Shown: one piece after another, positions 1 through 29,488 of the stretch
Layout of the letters: the number at the start of each line of letters is the position of its first letter
Numbering within the stretch: position 1 is the first letter of the stretch
DNA from: Macrostomum lignano
Lineage: Eukaryota
Reading direction: 5' to 3'
DNA: 64,000 nucleotides
Assembly: GCA_002269645.1 (NCBI GenBank)
Contig: NIVC01001274.1
Location: forward strand, 1-64,000
Position numbers and translations under genes: made by a program
The notes under the pieces: generated by a model
Told to the model about the DNA's origin: nothing
Databases searched by the model: none
The model's input: the letters and a program-made list of their open reading frames with translations, nothing else

Positions 1-5103
<5,103 letters not shown>

Positions 5104-6914
5104 TGCGCAAGCAGCAGACAGACAATTTAATGCTGTGCAAGCAGTCAAAGTGTGCTCTCCTTTAAATAGACTGTTTTGAAAAGCATCTATTTATACGACC
5201 CGAACAAACCTTGGCCTCGCTGTTTTAGCCTCGAGTTTGTTATTTGTCAAGGGCTGAGGCTACGATATGAGCTATTTCACTGTGTACCTCACCCTGTGAA
5301 AGCCTCTGGGCTGCTATTGTGCGCCGACCGCCATTAAGTTTTTCTACCCATGGAGACCTGAAGAACAACAAAACAACACTGCAACTTTATAGTGAGTCAT
5401 CTTCTCTCTATCTCTCCATCTCTCTTGAGTGCTGAGAGTGTATCAACTCTCTGACTCTCTGTGCAAAGGTTATCTTTTATTACTCTTGTTAATCCAAAAT
5501 AAACTATTCTACAGCCAATTCTGTTTTTTGTTTTTAGCTCGTATGTCGCTAGATAAATAACCCAGCTCATGGCTACGGGCCAGATGAGGGAAGAAAGGAG
5601 AGAGAAGAGTGAAGAGGAGATGAGAGAGAAGACAAGAGGAGGGAGGAAAACTAAGGAGAGGAGATGAGAGGATAAATGAAACGACAGAAGATGAGACGAG
5701 AAAGGAGAGAAGAGAACTTGAGAAGAGACACAATCCTTGAGCAGGTCGGATTGCTATTGGAAAGTTTCAAAGGACCCGAGGTCCGGGTAGAAAGGCTTCG
5801 TAGGCCTGAGTTGGCCTACAGATAAAACCAGGTACTCTACGGGCCGATCGCTTCACAAAGGGCCGGTGTGCAAATGTGAACGTCTTATAAAACAATTTAA
5901 CAATATAGATCTTGTACGTTAAATCTTCAGTTCGTCTATTAATATTAGACTCTCCAAATCTGAAGTGGTGCAGAGAATGCAACTAAGAAACTCCAGTAGA
6001 GAATTCTGAGAGATTTTAGAGTGCGCATTCAGAGCTAGCTGAGTTCATGCGAACAAGCATTTTTCCAACAATTTCAAGCTTAGCCTGCTGAGAACTCGCC
6101 TGACTCAAGGGCGAGGTGAGTGATGGCTAATTTTGGACGGGCTAAAACCAATTGTTTAGGAGGGTGAAGTCGTGCCCTGACTACTCGGTTTCATTATTTT
6201 TATTTTTACATTCGTACGTTACTGTCGGTAGGCTTGGTAGGTTGATAGGTTGTATAGCTAAGGTAGTTAGGAACATGCTACATGTAGACCATGTGCATGT
6301 AGAAAAATAAGGAGTTGGTTGGTAAATAGGTAGGTGGGTATGTATATTAGTAGCTGTTGGTAAGCAGGTAGATGGGTCGGCAGCTTTCGCAAGTACATAT
6401 AGGTATGTTAGTTGGCTGGTATTTAGTAGATTTGTTAGGAGGGTAGGCAGTTAAGCAGATGATGAGGTAGTTATAGGAACGTAAGCGAATAAGTTAGACT
6501 GATATCCAAGTAGCGAACCTGCAGAGTCACTGAATTCTAAATATAGCTGATTTGCATTGCAACAACAAGAAGAGCGTCATAATGCTGCCAACGTTTCATA
6601 AAAATGAAAAAAATATTTAGGCGCATTCTTGGCTTCATTCGGGCTTTATTTATGACCAAAATATTTTTACAGACTTTCAACTCAGATAAACCATATTTGC
6701 TTGGCTTGAAATTCTGAAAATTCTAATTTTTAAATTTAAATTTAACAATTACAATGATATTTATGAAAATATGAGCGAAACGTTAATTGTTCATTCCGTA
6801 TTAGTAAAGAAATTACTTTTAGTTGACAACTTCTATCAAACACTAAAAAACATAAGTTTTTGGCTTGTTCGCCACTACGCTTTGAAACCCAGTCTCAAAC
6901 TCACCCTTGAACTC

Positions 6915-19600: not shown

Positions 19601-22600
19601 TGGTGTTCCCGTCGTGATCTTTCATTTTGATCGCTTTCTTCTGAGCCTCTTTTTCGAGTTTATCTACAAGCATATAGCAAGTGTCAATGTTTCAGTTCTA
19701 CTTGGGCTATGCTTAAAGATAAGAAATATTCAAACTGTTAATGATCCAGTCTCTCACCTAGTAGATGTTCCAGCAAGCTTCCTTTCACGGAAGCAGCAAG
19801 CATCAGTGGCGTCACATCGTGGTTGTCTTTGCTAGTAAGCAGTTTATTGGCGTTTTGACTGGGCTGCAATTTATTTGCATATTAATTAATTAACTACATT
19901 TTTATATCAATCAAATAACGTCTGGGCGTAACCATTTCATTCGAGGGGCGCCATTTTATCTAAAGGGGCGCCATCACATTTAAGGCGGTGTCATTTCATT
20001 TGAGGCGGCGCCATTCCATTTGAGGGGGCGCCATTTTATTTCATCTAAGGTAGGGGCAGAACTATGGTCACAGCACACTAAATTAATAAATAGAAAATGC
20101 AATGATATTTGCTTTACCGGAATATTCTTCCAAAACAGAGTTTTCTGTCCCTCATTCACCGGAGCTGCCGATTCGCGTAAAATCTGCGATTGATTAAAAT
20201 TTAGACGTATTTTAGTCATCTGACTTATGCGTGTTAAACATGCGTATGTAACTAATGTCAGGTGTCGTAAGTATATTTGATTTGAGGCGGTCCAGAGTCG
20301 CATTAGAGTCACTGAGTTGTGTTTGAAGCGCATTTTCGTCGTTGATGAATTAGAGTCACATTTCCGGCGTTTCGGCGGCGTTCTGCAGTCGCTAAAAAAG
20401 TCGCAGAAGAAGAGCTTTAGCGTCACTGGAGATTGTTAGTGCGTCACTTCTGAGGCACTTTGGACGCGTTACAGAGTCGTTACTACTGGCCTTAAACAGA
20501 CTGTTGAATCGTAATTTCTGGGCGAATAGATAAATGCATGCTCATCGACTCAGAAGCGATGCAGTAACGATTTTACAGTGAAGCTAAAGCGCTTCTTCTG
20601 CGACTTTTAGGCGAATTGTATGCGTCCATTACTCCGCCACGTTCAGTGGCTTGCCAATTTGGGGGAGGCCTGCCTATTTATACCGCCGAGTGGCCTTTGC
20701 GCTCTCGCCACTCTCGCCACTCTGCACTCAATTTTTTGAACGAAATAAAAATAGAAAATTGCCCGTAACTTTTGGGGAGTCGGTTTGCTGCTCCCCCTTT
20801 ACGCTCGTAATGCTTCGTTGCGCTGTTGCCGTCTCTTGCTCGTCAAACATCGCTTTGTTTGCCTCTTTGCCTGTCCATCCTTATGGTTTAACCGTGACAT
20901 CTTGTCATTTTAGAGTCATTTCGAATCACTTCTTTCCAATTTGACCTGTCATCCGCAACGCGTCTGAAACGACTCTGAGACGACGCTAGTGACTCCGGGA
21001 AGCTTCTTGGCTTAAGTACCGTTTTAATCGGGCCCTCAGTTTTAGCCTATTACAACCTAATTGCGCTTTAACTAGCAATTTAAAAGTCACAAGAGTCGCC
21101 CCAGACGCGCTAGAGTCACTAGAGAGTTGTTTGCAACGACTTTTTAGCGACTCTTGTCACGGTATTGTTTTCAACGGCTGAATCTCATGTGGTGGATGAT
21201 TAGGAGTGCCTCTCATGTGGTGGATGATTAGGAGTGCCTCTCATGTGGTGGATGATTAGGAGTGCCTCTCATGTGGTGGATGATCAGGAGTGCCTCTCAT
21301 GTGGTGGATGATTAGGAGTGCCTCTCATGTGGTGGATGATTAGGAGTGCCTCTCATGTGGTGGATGATTAGGAGTGCCTCTCATGTGGTGGATGATTAGG
21401 AGTGACTCTCATGTGGTGGATGATTAGGAGTGCCTCTCATGTGGTGGATGATTAGGAGTGCCTCTCATGTGGTGGATGATTAGGAGTGCCTCTCATGTGG
21501 TGGATGATTAGGAGTGCCTCTCATGTGGTGGATGATTAGGAGTGACTCTCATGGATTTTAAGGGGTGCCATTTCATCCTAAGGGTGCCATTTCAACTGTG
21601 GTGAGGCGGGCAGAGGATTTAGCACACTAAATTAGTAAATAAAACATGCAACGATCTTTGCCATACCTGCATATTCTTCCAAGGCTGTTTTTCCAGTTTC
21701 TCGTTCACCTTCGCCGACACGCAGATTGAAACCTGTGATTGGTTAGAATTTAGACGTATTTTAGTCATCTAACTTATTCATGTCATACATGCGTATGTAA
21801 GTGTAGCAAGTATATTTGAATTTTGTATGACTCTCGTGGGCGGATGATCACAAGTGACTCTCATGGGTTCAATGATGAGGGACTCTCATTGATTTGAGGG
21901 GGCAATATTATATCTAAGAGGGCGCTATTCTATTTAAAGAGGCGCCATTTCATCTTAGGGGGCGCCATTTTATCTGGGGGCGCCATTTCATCTAAGGCGG
22001 CGCCATTTTATTTGAGGGGGCGCCATTTCATCTTAGGGGGCGCCATTTCATCTGAAGGGCGCCATTTAATTTCAGGGGCGCCATTTCATCTTAGGGGGCG
22101 CCATTTCATCTGAGGGGGTGTCATTTAATTTGAGGGGCGCCATTTCATCTGAAGGGCGCCATTTCATCTGAGGGGGCTTAAAACTAGAGTCGTTAGCACA
22201 CTAAATTAGTAAATTAAAAATTTATAGATTTTTTGCCTTACCGGATTACAACATTTGCAGCCTTTCTTAGTCGCTTTATTGTTCCAATCGTAGGCGAGTA
22301 AAAGCTGTGTTTGGTTAGAAATTAGACGTATATTAGTCATCTGATTTATTCCCATTAAACATGCGCTTAAGAATGTCGCAAGTATATTTGAACAAGTTCA
22401 TTGATCAGAAATGACTCTCATAGAATCGATGATTGATCAGAAGCGACTCTCATAGAATGGATGATTGATCAGGAGTGACTCTCATAGAATCGATTATTGA
22501 TCAGGAGTGACTCTCATAGAATCGATGATTGATCAGGAGTGACTCTCATAGAATCGATGATTGATCAGAAGCGACTCTCATAGAATCGATGATTGATCAG

Positions 22601-25600
22601 GAGTGACTCTCACAGAATCGATGATTGATCAGTAGTGACTCTCATAGAATCGATGATTGATCAGGAGTGACTCTCATTGAGACGATGATTGATCAGGAGT
22701 GACTCTCACAGAATCGATGATTGATCAGGAGTGACTCTCACAGAATGGATGATTGATCAGGAGTGACTCTCATAGAATAGAATGGATGATTGATCAGGAG
22801 TGACTCTCATAGAATAGAATGGATGATTGATCAGGAGTGACTCTCATTGAGACGATGATTGATCAGGAGTGAATCTCATAGAATCGATGATTGATCAGGA
22901 GTGACTCTCATAGAATCGATGATTGATCAGGAGTGACTCTCAAAGAATCGATGATTGATCAGGAGTGACTCTCATAGAATCGATGATTGATCAGAAGCGA
23001 CTCTCAAAGAATCGATGATTGATCAGGAGTGACTCTCATCGAGACGATGATTGATCAGGAGTGACTCTCATGGGTCGATGATCCGGAGTGATTCTCATGG
23101 AGACGATGATCAGGAGTGACTCTCATTGCGACGATGATTGATCAGGAGTGACTCTCATGGGTCGATGATCCGGAGTGATTCTCATGGAGACGATGATCAG
23201 GAGTGACTCTCATTGCGACGATGATTGATCAGGAGTGACTCTCATAGAATGGATGATTGATCAGGAGTGACTCTCATAGAATGGATGATTGATCAGGAGT
23301 GACTCTCATAGAATGGATGATTGATCAGGAGTGACTCTCATAGAATCGATGATTGATGAGGAGTGACTCTCATAGAATGGATGATTGATCAGGAGTGACT
23401 CTCATAGAATCGATAATTGATCAGTAGTGACTCTCATAGAATCAATGATTGATCAGGAGTGACTCTCATAGAATCGATAGACTCACTTTAATGATATTAT
23501 CGTCATTTCGATTGCAAGCAATGTGCACCGCTGTCTGTCCTCTGTCGTCTCGAATGTTCCAGTCAATTTCAGCTCCAGCCAGCAGGCTGATCAGTGCCCG
23601 GCTGTGGCAAAAATTCGCCGCTAAGTGCAACGGCGTCAGTCCTTTGCATGTCGCATTGGCAGCCTTGTTTCGGCGTTCGCTACCCTTGGAGCCATAGGAA
23701 TTGAGTATCGCCGAAACTATTCGGGCTCTGCCGCACTGCACTGCCAAGTTTAGACAACTCAAACCCGTTGCTTCGTCGAGATAATCCAGACAGACTGACC
23801 CGTATTTTGTGGTCAGCTGAGAAAACTTTTCTGCTTGCCCAGTGCGAATAGCGTGAAAAATCTGCGAACATTGAATTAAACTCAGACTGGTGAACACTGA
23901 TTTAATCTAGTCGAAGCTATTTAATCTAATCTAGGCTAATCTATTTTATCTAATCTAATCCAATAGATTATACTCGTATAATCCATATAATCCAATCCGG
24001 TCTAATACATTCAAATCTCATCTATTTTAATATTATCCATTTTAATCTAATTTAGTCCAGTTCAATATAAAATAATATAATATAATTAATCGAATCGAAT
24101 CGAATCGAATCGAATCGAATCGAATCGAATCTAATCTAATCTAATCTAATCTAATCTAATCTAATCTAATCTAATCTACACTAATCTAATCTTATCTTAT
24201 CTTATCTAATTTAATCCCATATACTAACAATTCTAATCTAATATAATCTTATCAAGTCTAATGTAAACTGGTCTTATTAATGACAACGTAAACTTATAGA
24301 ATTTGCAATCCTATATACTAAAAATGAGTTGTTTGTTTGTACGCAATCGATTAGAGAAAAAATGGCTTAACCGATTTTCATGAGACTTGCACTGTTCGAT
24401 CAGAAATTTTCCCGTGACGGTACATGCATCGTGGCTAAGAAATTGCTCGATGCTAAAGGCATTAAATATTCGAAAAACATGCTTTTTTGCAAAGGTCAAG
24501 CAAACTTTTCGACTTGAAATGCATTGTAAGAATGCTAGAGAAAAAACTGACTGGTTGATTCTGATTCTGAAATAGATTGCATCATAACTGAATTGTAACT
24601 CCGACTTGAATTGAAAATGCAGTGTGGAAGCGTAGCACCAGACTTGATTTAAATTGCGTAACCATATTGTTAACTGATACTGACTGACTGAGAAACTGAT
24701 TATGTCATAACTGCTTCGTGTGATTTACTCTATGCTTGGAGTTTTGAAACTTATAATTATATTATAGAAGTGCTAAAATTCATGTTATCAAAACGATGAC
24801 AGCTAGCCTAGAGGTAAACAGACTGATTGCTAAATGCAGGGACGATGGTTCGGATTTTTAGAGAGTTTTTTTAATTAAAGTTTTTTAACGCCAAGAAAAC
24901 TAAAAAATCATGGAAGCGTCATGTAAAAAATCATAAAAGCGTTATGTAAAAAATCATAGAAGCGTCATGTAAACAATCATAGAAGCGTCATGTAAAAATC
25001 ATAGAAGCGTCATGTAGACAATCATAGAAGCGTCATGTAAACAATCATAGAAGCGTCATGTAAACAATCATAGAAGCGTCATGTAAAAATTATAGAAGCG
25101 TCATTTAAACAATCATAGAAGCGTCATGTAAACAATCATAGAAGCGTCATGTAAAAATCATAGAAGCGTCCTGCAGAAATCGTAGAAGCGTCATGAAATA
25201 ATCATAGAAGCGTCATGTAAAAAGCATAGAAGCGTCATGTAAAAAATCTTAGAAGCGTCATGTAAAAATTATAGAAGCGTCATATAAACAATCATAGAAG
25301 CGTCATGTAAAAATCTTAGAAGCGTCATGTAAAAATTATAGAAGCGTCATATAAACAATCATAGAAGCGTCATGTAAACAATCATAGAAGCGTCATGTAA
25401 AAATCATAGAAGCGTCATGTAAAAATCATAGTAGCGTCATGTAAAAATCATAGAAGCGTCCTGCAGAAATCGTAGAAGCGTCATGAAATAATCATAGAAG
25501 CGTGATGTAAAAAGCATAGAAGCGTCATGTAAACAATCATAGAAGCATCATGTAAACCATCATAGAAACGTCATGTAAAAAATCATAGAAGCGTCATATA

Positions 25601-28600
25601 AACATCATAGAAGCGTCATGTAAACAATCATAGAAGCGTCATGTAAACAATCATAGAAGCGTCATGTAAAAATATAAGCGCCATGTAAAAACCATAGAAG
25701 CGTCATGTAAACAATCATAGAAGCGTCATGTAAAAAATCATAGAAGCGTCATGAAAAAATCATAGAAGCGTCATGTAAACAATCATAGAGGCGTCATGTA
25801 AAAAATATAAGCGTCATGTAAAAACTATAGAAACGTCGTATAAACAATCATAGAAGCGTCATGTAAAAATCATAGTAGCGTCATGTAAAAAATCATAGAA
25901 GCGTCATGTAAACAATCATAGAAGCGTCATATAAACAATCATAGAAGCGTCATCTAAAAATCATAGAAGCGTCACGTAAAAATCATTGAAGCGTCATGTA
26001 AAAAAATCATGGAAGCGTCATATAAACATCATAGAAGCGTTATGTAAACAATCATAGAAGCGTCATGTAAAAAATCATAGAAGCGTCATTTAAACATCAT
26101 CGAAGCGTCATGTAAACAATCATAGAAGCGTCATGTAAACAATCATAGAAGCGTCATGTAAAAATATAAGCGTCATGTAAAAAGCATAGAAGCGTCATGT
26201 AAACAATCATAGAAGCTTCATGTAAAAAATCATAGAAGTGTCATGAAAAAATCATAGAAGCGTCATGTAAACAATCACAGAAGCGTCATGTAAAAAATAT
26301 AAGCGTCATGTAAAAACCATAGAAGCGTCATGTAAACAATCATAGAAGCGTCGTGTAAACAATCATAGAAGCGTCATGTAAAAATCATAGAAGCGTCATG
26401 TAAAAATCAAAGAAGCGTCATGTAAAAAATCATAGAAGCGTCATGTAAAAATCATAGAAGCGTCATGTAAACAATCATAGAAGCGTCATATAAACAATCA
26501 TAGAAGCGTCATCTAAAAATCATAGAAGCTTCACGTAAAAATCATTGAAGCGTCATGTAAAAAATCATGGAAGCGTCATATAAACATCATAGAAGCGTTA
26601 TGTAAACAATCATAGAAGCGTCATGTAAAAAATCATAGAAGCGTCATTTAAACATCATCGAAGCGTCATGTAAACAATCATAGAAGCGTCATGTAAACAA
26701 TCATAGAAGCGTCATGTAAAAATATAAGCGTCATGTAAAAAGCATAGAAGCGTCATGTAAACAATCATAGAAGCGTCATGTAAAAAATCATAGAAGTGTC
26801 ATGAAAAAATCATAGAAGCGTCATGTAAACAATCACAGAAGCGTCATGTAAAAAATATAAGCGTCATGTAAAAACCATAGAAGCGTCATGTAAACAATCA
26901 TAAAAGCGTCATGTAAAAAATCGTAGAAGCGTCATTTAAAAAATCATAGAAGTGTCATGTAAAAAATCGTGGAAGCATCATGTAAAAAGCATAGAAGTGT
27001 CATGTAAAAAATCATAGAAGCGTCATGTAAACAATCATAGAAGCGTCATGTAAAAAATCGTGGAAGCATCATGTAAAAAGCATAGAAGTGTCATGTAAAA
27101 AATCATAGAAGCGTCATGTAAACAATCGTAGAAGCGTCATTTAAAAAATCATAGAAGCGTCATGTAAACAATCATGGAAGCGTCATGTAAACAATCATAG
27201 AAGCGTAATGTAAAAATCATAGTAGCGTCATGTAAAAAATCATAGAAGCGTCATGTAAAAAGCATAGAAGCGTCATATAAACAATCATAGAAGCGTCATG
27301 CAAACAATCATAGAAGCGTCATGTAAAAATCATAGAAGCGTCATGTAAAAATCATAGTAGCGTCATGTAAACAATCATAGAAGCGTCATATAAACAATCA
27401 TAGAAGCGTCATGGAAAAGCATAGTAGCGTCATGTAGACAATCATAGAAGCGTCATGTAAAAAATCATAGAAGCGTCATGTAAAAATCATAGAAGCGTCA
27501 TGTAAACAATCATGGAAGCGTCATGTAAAAAAAATCTTAGAAGCGTCATGTAAAAAGCATAGAAGCGTCATATAAACAATCATAGAAGCGTCATATAAAA
27601 AATCATAGAAGCATCATGTAAAAAAATATGGGGGCCGTAGCCCAGCGGTAGCGCAGCTGCTCTGGTGTGCCGCGACCCAGGCTCGATTCCAAGTGCAGCC
27701 ACAAAAATTTGGGGCTGAATTGGAAATTCGGCTTGGCTCGCTTGTGCAATTTACGGCCTTGAGAGCCAACCCCCCAAGGCGCAGTGAAGTGTACATGCCT
27801 AACAATTGATAAAGTTAGGGCCGCTGTACACTCCTGTGTGAGTGTGTGCCTGCGTAACGTATCCGCGCGCTTGTATGCCTGCTCAGGGGAGTCGGCGGAA
27901 TGGGCAGCAATGCCTCTCGCCGGTTGTGTGCCTATGTCGCCTAAAGTGCGCCAGGGTGCACACAACCCCCCTGCCTCTAATAAAAAAAATCATGTAAAAA
28001 TCATAGAAGCGTCATGAAAAATCATAGAAGCCTCATTTAAAGACTAATGAAAGTGTCATTTAAAAAATTAAGAAGCATCATGGTAGAATAAAAGAAGCGT
28101 CATGTCAGACATGAAGGTGTCATGTAAAAATTAAATGCAGTTATAATGCTGTGCTGGGGAGAAAAACTGAGACGTAAAGGCTCTCAGAGAATAACTGAGA
28201 TTACGGGGGGGGGGTGGTTCTGAGATGTCAAAGCAAAAGTCAGAAGCTACTTCAAAGTTCATGTACTTTACTCAATTTTTTTATTGCATTCTTTGTTGGC
28301 TCGCCACGGGGGGAGGCGCTGATAGAAGAAGAGTCATGTAAAAAATAAAAGTAGCACTAAGTATACATAAAAGAAAGGTCATGTCGAAGTTAAAAGATTC
28401 ATTTGGGAATTGCTACGATGTCAAAGCTTGGTGGAAATCGTTATAGTGCTGTGATTCTTAAAGAAGGAATCACTAAAATGTCAAGGCTTAGGGGAGAAGA
28501 ATTGCTGAGATTTCAAGGCTTTAGGTTGGGTGAAAGTTAGGTTTAGGTCAGGTGTGGGTTGAGGGTTATATTTTATCGGGTTTCAAGGTTAACAGGGGAT

Positions 28601-29488
28601 TTTTTAGATTTCAAGGTTTATGGGGGGCATCGCTGACATGTCAAGGCTTACGGGGGGGAATAGCTGAGATGTCAAGGCTCACTGGGTAATAAATGAGATT
28701 TCAAGGCTAAAGCCAGAAGCTACATGTAGTTTATTGAAAACTTTTTATTACATTATTTGATGCCTCCTCAGGGGAGGGATCGCTGATAAAAAAAGCGTAA
28801 TGTAAAAAATAAAAGAAGCTTCATGTCGAAGTTAAGAGATTCATTTGGGAATCCCTACGATGTCGAGGCTTGCAGGGAATCGCTATAGTGCTGTAGTGCT
28901 ATAATGACTGTTGGAGAGAATTACTGAAATGTCAATGCTTTAGGGTTAGGTTAGGGTTAGGGTTAGGGTTAGGGTTAGGGCTAGGGTTAGGCTTGGGTTA
29001 GGGTTAGGGTTTGGTTAGGATTAGGGTTAGAAGGTTGACAGATATTTTTAGATTTTCAAGGCTTTTTGGGGGCATTGCTGAGATGTCAGGGGGGGGGGAG
29101 TTGATATGTTAAAGCTTGTGGGGGGAATTACTGACATGTCAAGGCTTACAAGGTTTGACAGGAGATTTTTTAAGATTTCAAGGATACATGTAGCTTATTA
29201 AAAAACGTGTATTGCATTTCTTTGGCTCCCCAACGGGGGGCGTAGATTGCTAGTCCAATCTATAACCGTAATTGCTTAAGAATTAAAAGTAATATAAGTA
29301 CGTATAAAGGTGTTTAATAGTTGAATTCTCACCTGTTTTCGCTGTTGTCCGGCGTCCAAACTTACGTCCAGCTCTTCTTTCATATTTTGCTGTTTGCTTG
29401 TTTGCTTGGGTTCTTCTGAATCGGAATCTACACTTGCGTCACTGTAACTAGACGCGTCAGATTCTTCACAACTGTTCACATTGGACAT
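10626..29488 (-). CDS. TRPA1: TRPA1-like ankyrin-repeat TRP cation channel (paralog 2, full length; two apparent 1-bp lesions; orthology uncertain)
   Basis: Exons: 29333-29488, 23487-23861, 22242-22304, 21667-21732, 20118-20183, 19758-19863, 19566-19663, 19435-19482, 18847-18971, 17915-17963, 16570-16875, 15400-15671, 15196-15307, 14231-14399, 14056-14159 (or -14140), 13513-13566, 13275-13423, 12710-12890, 12520-12612, 12275-12448, 12064-12193, 11741-11923, 11082-11150, 10626-10907. Ankyrin repeats are followed by TRPA hallmarks: HMPDAAMLVLNRS, VEYNFDHL, LLKHPVTTSLLESK, six hydrophobic segments, GIYPAMF, pore TFDMTAGELDY, and S6/TRP-like FVIIMPICLVNMLVGIAVGDI. Confidence 0.9.
11212..11740 (-). 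repeat. 20-bp minisatellite (sense strand ATGCTGTAGTGAGTAGTCTC), about 26 units
   Basis: Abuts the donor of exon 11741-11923; the unit resembles the exon-intron junction. Confidence 0.97.
14490..15150 (+). repeat. ~56-bp minisatellite (AGACAGATACCAAGACAAAGACC...AAATCCA)
   Basis: About 11 units, intronic. Confidence 0.95.
16185..16500 (+). repeat. ~18-bp minisatellite (CCACCAAGAGACAGGGGG)
   Basis: Direct reading, intronic. Confidence 0.93.
17016..17720 (+). repeat. 21-bp minisatellite (CATTTTGACTGTGCAGACACT)
   Basis: About 33 units, intronic. Confidence 0.97.
19080..19303. mobile_element. Putative MITE with CCCG...CGGG termini and possible 3-bp TSD (GAA)
   Basis: Left CCCGATGAAAACGGTACC and right GGTAACGTTTTTAACGGG. 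GAA at 19077-19079 and 19304-19306. Related ends at 21016-21032 and about 21158-21178. Confidence 0.55.
20390..20612. repeat. Inverted repeat inside a degenerate non-autonomous element
   Basis: CTAAAAAAGTCGCAGAAGAAGAGCTTTAGCGTCACTG pairs with CAGTGAAGCTAAAGCGCTTCTTCTGCGACTTTTAG. Confidence 0.75.
21182..21553 (+). repeat. 28-bp minisatellite (TGTGGTGGATGATTAGGAGTGCCTCTCA)
   Basis: About 13 units; related to the 32-mer at 22400-23478. Confidence 0.95.
21895..22180 (+). repeat. ~20-bp GGGGCGCCATTTCATCT repeat (also at 19940-20050 and 21560-21595)
   Basis: Direct reading; lies next to each duplicated exon. Confidence 0.9.
22400..23478 (+). repeat. 32-bp minisatellite (GAGTGACTCTCATAGAATCGATGATTGATCAG)
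   Basis: About 33 units, intronic. Confidence 0.97.
24088..24210 (+). repeat. (ATCGA)n/(ATCTA)n pentanucleotide microsatellite
   Basis: Direct reading. Confidence 0.9.
24900..28110 (+). repeat. 22-23-bp satellite (AATCATAGAAGCGTCATGTAAA[C/A]), interrupted by a SINE
   Basis: More than 100 units in the first large intron of the TRPA gene. Confidence 0.98.
27630..27989 (+). mobile_element. tRNA-derived SINE, copy 1
   Basis: 5' GGGGGCCGTAGCCCAGCGGTAG (A box), GGCTCGATTCC (B box), 3' stem GGTTGTGTGC...GCACACAACC, AATAAA plus A-tail, and an imperfect TSD (ATCATGTAAAAA). A second copy lies at 48118. Confidence 0.9.
28938..29030 (+). repeat. Interstitial (TTAGGG)n telomeric-type repeat
   Basis: About 14 perfect or degenerate TTAGGG units. 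Confidence 0.9.

Follow-up and report, generated by a model that had tools for sequence, protein, structure and literature searches.

The window analysed here, 64,000 nucleotides (nt) of Macrostomum lignano DNA from contig NIVC01001274.1, contains two TRPA-like genes in tandem on the minus strand. In one of them, called paralog 2 in the following, the interval 19940-23478 lies between two exons of the ankyrin-repeat part and holds three small exons, C, B and A in transcript order, to which we refer as cassettes. It is probable that one small coding exon was triplicated in tandem, that its copies are spliced in series in place of an ankyrin exon of the type found in the other paralog, and that their cores diverged later. 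As far as the gene models show, all three exons are spliced in series into the mRNA, and they may be included constitutively in every tissue.

Exon structure and public gene models

Exon C (22242-22304, 63 nt, LLLAYDWNNKATKKGCKCCNP), exon B (21667-21732, 66 nt, VSICVSAKVNEKLEKQPWKNMQ) and exon A (20118-20183, 66 nt, ILRESAAPVNEGQKTLFWKNIP) lie on the minus strand, have each a CAG acceptor and a GT donor, are of phase 0-0 and are open only in frame 0. They are framed by two constitutive exons of the same strand. The upstream one, E_a (23487-23861, 125 residues, phase 0-0, donor AAA/gtgagt), encodes ankyrin repeats 1-4 to ...NRNDDNIIK, and with the downstream one, E_b (19758-19863, PSQNANKLLTSKDNHDVTPLMLAASVKGSLLEHLL), regular ankyrin repeats resume. 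The four introns from E_a to E_b measure 1182, 509, 1483 and 254 nt and are all GT-AG. Splice junctions recomputed from the gene model that matches the window copy, A0A1I8JLU6 (P0181), coincide with these coordinates, and both the exon borders and the peptides had been read correctly in the initial annotation. Its remark that nothing of this appears in the track of open reading frames (ORFs) was wrong, as the exons are located within the listed minus-strand ORFs 19980-20426, 21619-21768 and 22206-22355. The three exons are neighbours of equal phase and similar length (63/66/66 nt) and consecutive in the gene model, as is expected of tandem exons; because all are phase 0-0, every combination of them keeps the frame.

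C, B and A are found in series in three public M. lignano models, namely P0181, A0A1I8HWJ3 (P0004) and PAA57810.1 (BOX15_Mlig019302g1, P0002), which span two assemblies and two genome copies. With slashes for exon junctions, all three read .../LLLAYDW(N or S)NKATKKGCKCCNP/VSICVSAKVNEKLEKQPWKNMQ/ILRESAAPVNEGQKTLFWKNIP/PSQNANK..., and the cassettes are located between ...NRNDDNIIK and PSQNANKLLTSKD... in these models. The NCBI BOX15 models were derived from RNA-seq via STAR and StringTie/TACO and from a de novo transcriptome, and TransDecoder was used to predict their ORFs (PMC5730564). Since this annotation was built from RNA-seq, P0002 represents transcript-level evidence for the C-B-A chain (PMC5730564). 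The cassettes are thus part of an RNA-seq-derived coding sequence (PAA57810.1) and of A0A1I8JLU6 and A0A1I8HWJ3. Transcripts that skip B and A, which had been named as the observation that would speak against the exons, are not seen in the public models; B and A are present in 3/3. As the exons are already annotated publicly, there is nothing to change in the annotation.

Repeat units and minisatellite arrays

Each cassette is the core of a ~200-bp unit, and the three units align with long invariant blocks on either side of a divergent core. Three diagnostic 18-24-mers from these blocks have exactly three occurrences each in the 64 kb, where 0-0.05 are expected by chance. On the minus strand, like all flanks and arrays described here, the upstream flank of unit C (22305-22391) reads TCAAATATACTT...GCATG...AGATGACTAA.ATACGTCTAA.TTCTAACCAAACACAG, with a branch-point-like CTAAC and the CAG acceptor, and the downstream flank (22195-22241) reads GTAAGGCAAA...TTTACTAATTTAGTGTGCT. 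The corresponding intron flanks are 21733-21819 and 21621-21666 in unit B, and 20184-20280 and 20072-20117 in unit A, whose upstream flank has a 10-nt insertion in comparison to B and C. A splice module consisting of the CTAAC branch-point-like site, the CAG acceptor and a GTAAG or GTATG donor is common to each copy. A full TGCATG occurs 22 nt downstream of exon B only, within the downstream flank of that unit.

Arrays were called with Tandem Repeats Finder (TRF) and belong to two families, m1 of the GACTCTCA type and m2 of the GGCGCCATTT type. In transcript order the interval is composed of m1-unit C-m2-m1-unit B-m2-m1-(0.9 kb)-unit A-m2. The first m1 array (22400-23478, 32-mer x 34, transcript sense ...ATGAGAGTCACTCCTGATCAATCATCGATTCT...) makes up nearly the whole intron between E_a and C. 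Unit C is followed by an m2 array (21912-22177, 20-mer x 13.6, transcript sense GATGAAATGGCGCCCCCTCA) and by an m1 remnant of three degenerate (A/C)TGAGAGTC units (21826-21890) directly upstream of unit B. Behind unit B there are an m2 remnant of two GAAATGGCACCC units (21561-21596) and an m1-type array (21183-21553, 28-mer x 13, CATGAGAGGCACTCCTAATCATCCACCA), then the non-array part of intron B-A (20290-21182), and, behind unit A, a last m2 array (19932-20041, 20-mer x 5.6). Both families are restricted to one 3.6-kb interval of the window, which has dozens of unrelated arrays. The shared ~200-bp context bracketed by two repeat families, as first described, is therefore borne out by alignment, k-mer counts and TRF.

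Two side observations concern these introns. The m2 20-mers (21912-22177, 19932-20041) contain, in transcript sense, ...GCGCCCCCTCAG/ATGAAATG..., whose pyrimidine tract and CAG make it splice-acceptor-like; this motif recurs just downstream of the cassette donors, and a TGA is met within 8 codons of the CAG. The non-array part of intron B-A is rich in GACTCT/GAGTC motifs and holds an inverted repeat of 33 nt (94% complementary, arms 20396-20428 and 20576-20608, 147 nt apart) as well as a second arm pair (20432-20454 and 20549-20571). By their sequence these inverted repeats look like a small hairpin or an element resembling miniature inverted-repeat transposable elements (MITEs).

Divergence of exons and intron flanks

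In pairwise comparisons of the units, identity amounts to 80-89% in the flanks (87-97 nt upstream, 46-47 nt downstream) and to 49-68% in the exons. Between A and B the exon shows 26/66 differences and the flanks 17/133 (Fisher p = 4e-5), and the same contrast gives p = 1.5e-7 for C-A and p = 1.3e-8 for C-B. Nonsynonymous changes between A and B alone (22/52) also exceed the flank changes (17/133, p = 3e-5). That the flanks are better conserved than the coding part had been suspected from the sequence and holds for all pairs (p 4e-5 to 1.3e-8), and the rapid coding diversification proposed along with it is supported as well: the coding cores diverged several-fold faster than the intron flanks. 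The homology of the copies is indicated by these flanks, 80-89% identical in all pairs, and by the exon ends. A and B are identical at 40/66 nt and 8/22 residues. For this pair the Nei-Gojobori method, used to obtain the dN/dS ratio (nonsynonymous to synonymous substitution rates) that had been called for, yields dN 0.55-0.63 and dS 0.32-0.35, the latter from only ~14 synonymous sites. The contrast between exons and flanks suggests either that the triplication is fairly recent and the exons diverged at an accelerated rate after it, or that there was past gene conversion which spared the exon cores.

The gene and the protein segment encoded by the cassettes

The N-terminal part of paralog 2 is a long ankyrin array according to PDB profiles, AlphaFold2 and Foldseek. 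In a protein database search the downstream exons match M. lignano proteins with 87-100% identity, and the protein P0003 carries PF00520. Full-length database matches are TRPA1 proteins of bird, snail and bat (21-24% identity, 71-100% of the query), and the sole PDB match of the membrane exons is Drosophila TRPA1 7ykr, a weak one (E = 3e-4). An N-terminal ankyrin array together with a six-segment ion-transport domain most like TRPA1 is what defines the TRPA subfamily. Judged by these similarities, paralog 2 appears to be a TRPA-like channel gene. A literature search on Macrostomum TRPA and TRP channels returned nothing about this gene. Within its intron 1 there is an interstitial telomere-type TTAGGG run of ~16 copies (28940-29030).

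The second TRPA-like gene, paralog 1 (window 1-5150, minus strand), follows directly downstream in tandem. The initial annotation held that paralog 1 has no segment corresponding to the cassettes. This is not correct: at the equivalent position and in ankyrin register it possesses a single exon of 105 nt and phase 0-0 (3331-3435, minus strand), beginning after ...RRNHEEVVQ. The spliced product of paralog 1 gives a gap-free alignment with 144 residues of ankyrin-1/2 repeats, and the exon encodes an ordinary ankyrin repeat in register; a canonical 33-residue repeat is recognizable in this exon and not in the cassette segment of paralog 2. Paralog 1 has neither the triplication nor the shared unit flanks nor the two arrays; in its next intron a 23-mer minisatellite is found (3087-3278). 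Counted from where repeat 4 begins up to the next regular repeat, the residues number 66 (19+35+12) in paralog 1 and 98 (19+65+14) in paralog 2. Accordingly, the cassettes are not inserted into an intact array, as was originally proposed, and take the place of an ancestral exon, the segment replacing the one that encodes a regular ankyrin repeat in paralog 1. The 98 residues of paralog 2 are near three repeat lengths, compared to 66 in paralog 1, which may be a coincidence: the arithmetic of a preserved register (98 vs 99 residues) fits, but AlphaFold2 folds no repeats there.

PDB profile alignments of paralog 2 extend through ...NIIKLLLAYD and end there. The AlphaFold2 modelling that had been suggested used P0181 and an alignment of 56 sequences, and it reached a mean predicted local distance difference test score (pLDDT) of 80.6 and a predicted template modelling score (pTM) of 0.77. 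A helix of residues 173-181 crosses the E_a/C junction (block 171-180, mean pLDDT 91). Residues 190-193 and 195-240 are below 50, and the repeats on either side are above 90, so that the cassette stretch is of low confidence between confident ankyrin stacks. Only LLLAYDWNN, the first ~9 residues of exon C, continues ankyrin repeat 4 and finishes its helix 2. To describe the whole segment as non-ankyrin therefore fails for these residues and holds for the remaining ~55 (pLDDT <50). Foldseek retrieved generic ankyrin proteins and Drosophila TRPA1 only. The beginning of the paralog 1 exon and the ankyrin helix-2/loop consensus are both similar to cassette A (ILRESAAPVNEGQ...), although this match is too short for statistics.

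The remaining ~55 residues are rich in lysine and include four lysine-flanked cysteines within ten residues (KKGCKCCNPVSIC), contributed by exon C and the start of exon B. From its composition this cluster could be an acylation, metal-binding or electrophile-reactive site. In an exhaustive phmmer search of the cassette peptide against 1.84 billion representatives, only the species' own cluster was related; two bacterial Ig-repeat proteins were rejected as homologues, because their scores are sums of ten weak repeat hits. The ~55-residue stretch is lineage-specific and, going by the model, probably flexible, and it parts a four-repeat N-terminal ankyrin module from the remaining array.

A second copy of the locus

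P0002 maps to contig NIVC01002443.1 (34.6 kb, L003), where the locus has a ~95%-identical duplicate, and which is collinear with the window at ~90-96% nucleotide identity over the longer unique blocks. This fits the assembly, in which ~180 Mb of duplicated blocks at >=95% identity were reported (PMC5730564). L003 holds all three units in unchanged order. Between the two copies 1/195 nt of the cassette exons is changed (N to S, exon C), compared to 9/410 in the unit flanks and 75/3179 in non-repeat intron. The 9/410 flank changes stand against 9.7 expected at the neutral intron rate, and a 3-fold constraint on the flanks, which predicts ~3 changes, is rejected (p = 0.006). The flanks are hence neutral between copies, and strong purifying selection is not behind their likeness. 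The cassette exons are, if anything, conserved between the copies (p = 0.06). Every unit of the window is most similar to the L003 unit at the corresponding position, which means that there was no conversion since the copies split.

The arrays differ considerably. The 32-mer array counts 110 copies in L003 and 34 in the window, the 28-mer array 20 and 13. E_a is present in P0181 and P0004 and missing from L003 and from P0002; most of intron 1, including a 2.7-kb 23-mer array, is likewise unmatched in L003, where the expanded 32-mer array begins at the expected position of E_a (L003 11232-14742 corresponds to window 22400-23861 and 24901-27625). Because L003 lacks E_a, P0002 joins exon 1 directly to C. 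The array expansion and the loss of E_a give indirect support to array-associated recombination reshaping the locus.

E_b (window 19758-19863, L003 17407-17532) differs between the copies at 6/126 nt, with at least 4 residues changed, compared to 1/195 nt in the cassettes, and one E_b copy may be under relaxed constraint. The upstream neighbour gene in L003 (1-6516) encodes an IFT140/IFT122-type WD40-TPR protein.

Origin of the cassettes

The anatomy, the occurrence of C, B and A in public gene models, the contrast between exon and flank divergence and the low-confidence fold are observed, whereas the way in which the recombination proceeded, the reason why the cores diverged so quickly and whatever function the loop may have are inferred. 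A block consisting of a GAGAGTCAC-type minisatellite, the ~200-bp exon unit and a AAATGGCGCC-type minisatellite was probably triplicated in tandem, and the three cassettes together replace the single 35-residue ankyrin exon seen in the neighbouring paralog. After the triplication the exon cores would have diverged several times faster than the surrounding intron, most likely in an adaptive burst, or by unconstrained change plus indels, in a tolerant loop. The arrays on both sides are still unstable. Of the amplification by unequal crossing-over between minisatellites, as initially favoured, the tandem triplication of the block stands, and crossing-over as its mechanism is plausible. This mechanism does not hold for the first duplication junction (m2/m1), which is not a simple homologous exchange because the m1 and m2 families are unrelated; the later duplication steps could have proceeded by homologous exchange.

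Several points weigh against a serial triplication with later divergence of the cores. The core of exon C is identical to A and B at only 25-27/63 nt, so that the homology rests on the flanks and exon ends. The dN/dS ratio of A-B, ~1.7, is based on ~14 synonymous sites only and does not exceed 1 significantly. If the flanks were converted and the cores spared, an equal contrast would result without any accelerated exon evolution. The low pLDDT of the loop may merely reflect a homologue-poor alignment and not disorder. The annotation pipeline retained only isoforms of at least 0.75 of the major one, and because of this filter skipping isoforms would be discarded (PMC5730564). The two UniRef models, which stem from the older assembly, could finally be partly ab initio.

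Unlikely, if still deserving serious weight, is an old triplication in which the cores drifted and the flanks were homogenised by repeated conversion or unequal exchange seeded in the arrays. The arrays are indeed recombinogenic (34 vs 110 and 13 vs 20 copies, and an exon loss), the similarity runs a few bases into both exon ends, as it would for conversion tracts coming from the flanks, and the synonymous divergence of A-B (0.32-0.35) is higher than that of the flanks (0.14), though not significantly (p = 0.12). However, in every one of the three units the tracts would have to end close to both exon borders. In addition, the flanks are short (46-97 nt) and at only 80-89% identity poor conversion substrates, and the units are closest to their positional L003 counterparts, which leaves no conversion since the split.

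The initial annotation had considered that the exons are included together or used as cassette or mutually exclusive exons. The first option agrees with the three gene models. We regard it as rather improbable that C, B and A are instead mutually exclusive or skippable, giving up to eight in-frame isoforms, with the flanks as splicing-regulatory modules. All combinations are in frame, and each exon start could extend ankyrin helix 2 after ...NIIK (LLLAYD, VSICVS, ILRESAAPVNE), the last of these being near the LLLEAGADVNA consensus. Conserved intron flanks typify regulated exons (PMC6071210), and none of the six unit copies deviates from GCATG, the core of the Rbfox-type UGCAUG, in its upstream flank, which is a lead only. 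Mutually exclusive exons are used by insect TrpA1 (PMC11471635), and minor isoforms are dropped by the annotation pipeline (PMC5730564). Nevertheless, the public models of both assemblies and both genome copies all chain C-B-A (3/3) and none has one exon per mRNA; together with the absence of docking/selector complementarity this contradicts mutually exclusive use. Candidate RNA structures of the docking/selector or exon-looping kind gave no signal: the RNAalifold consensus of the six unit copies was weak (-7.5 kcal/mol, covariation term -0.06), no inverted repeat of at least 14 nt touches any unit flank, and duplex energies of the flanks, within the unit, across introns or against unique intron ends, are within the shuffle distributions. 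Introns of 254-1483 nt, all GT-AG, exclude steric exclusion, and from one genome copy to the other the flanks change at the neutral rate. A search of the flanks in Rfam for an RNA family or intronic small nucleolar RNA had no match at E of 1 or better.

Little credence can be given to a more far-reaching version, in which the micro-exons are a recent diversity module with cores under positive selection, possibly combined per sensory cell via the GCAUG-containing flanks, which yields a variable Lys/Cys-rich loop (KKGCKCCNP...SIC) in the ankyrin domain. If this were true, the loop could be lipid-anchored or electrophile-reactive and thereby retune the channel. The tuning of ankyrin-domain sensing by the cassettes is speculation.

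Hardly credible is a dispersed repeat or transposon that landed in the intron and was exonised: repeats make up over half of the M. lignano genome, simple and tandem ones 15% (PMC5730564), the window has dozens of unrelated minisatellite arrays, the flanks are more similar than the cores and an inverted-repeat element is present in intron B-A, but there are only three unit copies in the 64-kb window and three collinear ones in the 34.6-kb L003, both arrays are confined to the cassette interval of the window, terminal inverted repeats, a poly-A tail, an ORF and an Rfam match are all missing from the units, paralog 1 has an equal-phase exon at the equivalent place, exon C carries on the ankyrin helix in frame, and the peptide is in no other protein among the 1.84 billion representatives.

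Significance and comparison with known systems

Taken as a serial triplication, the cassettes are a real but fairly ordinary case of tandem exon duplication, and what is odd about them is the conservation of intron over exon and the orphan Lys/Cys-rich loop that replaces an ankyrin repeat. The locus is a clean and datable case of unstable intronic minisatellites remodelling a repeat-protein gene: a single locus shows an exon amplified three-fold and, in a duplicate genome copy, the loss of the adjacent exon. The pattern of introns more alike than exons is unusual and makes the locus a small test case, provided by nature, for telling adaptive divergence from gene conversion. Around repeats 4-5 the loop interrupts a TRPA-like ankyrin array, to which it contributes a cluster of cysteines. 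The cytosolic N-terminal region of TRPA channels influences thermal and chemical gating, as the insect TrpA1 exons indicate, and the interest for the channel is limited until the loop is shown to matter.

In solenoid proteins of the ankyrin, nebulin or collagen type the number of repeats changes through exon duplication. The M. lignano locus is similar in that a symmetric exon of a repeat-protein gene is amplified in tandem. In contrast to such expansions, the amplified exon of 21-22 residues is smaller than the 33-residue ankyrin repeat and has no predicted ankyrin fold.

The cassettes also resemble tandem exon duplication in animal genes in general, as reviewed by Ivanov and Pervouchine, where the copies have equal phase and near-equal length, parts of the introns are copied along and the exons are expressed (PMC9013439, PMC6071210). 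Elsewhere such copies are often mutually exclusive, whereas in the M. lignano models all copies are found in one mRNA. Duplicated exons also usually stay more alike than their introns due to coding constraint (PMC6071210), an order that is reversed at the M. lignano locus. With the docking/selector clusters of Dscam, srp and 14-3-3zeta the cassettes share duplicated exons and a conserved intronic element before each of them (PMC6071210). These clusters include one exon, while the M. lignano models include three and no docking pairing was found. Insect TrpA1 (exons 1a/1b and 10a/10b) is likewise a TRPA-family gene with duplicated small exons for the cytosolic N-terminal part, and the choice of exon changes its chemical and thermal sensitivity (PMC11471635). 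The insect exons, however, are mutually exclusive and encode the N-terminus or the region from the ankyrin repeats to the membrane, whereas the M. lignano cassettes break the ankyrin array itself.

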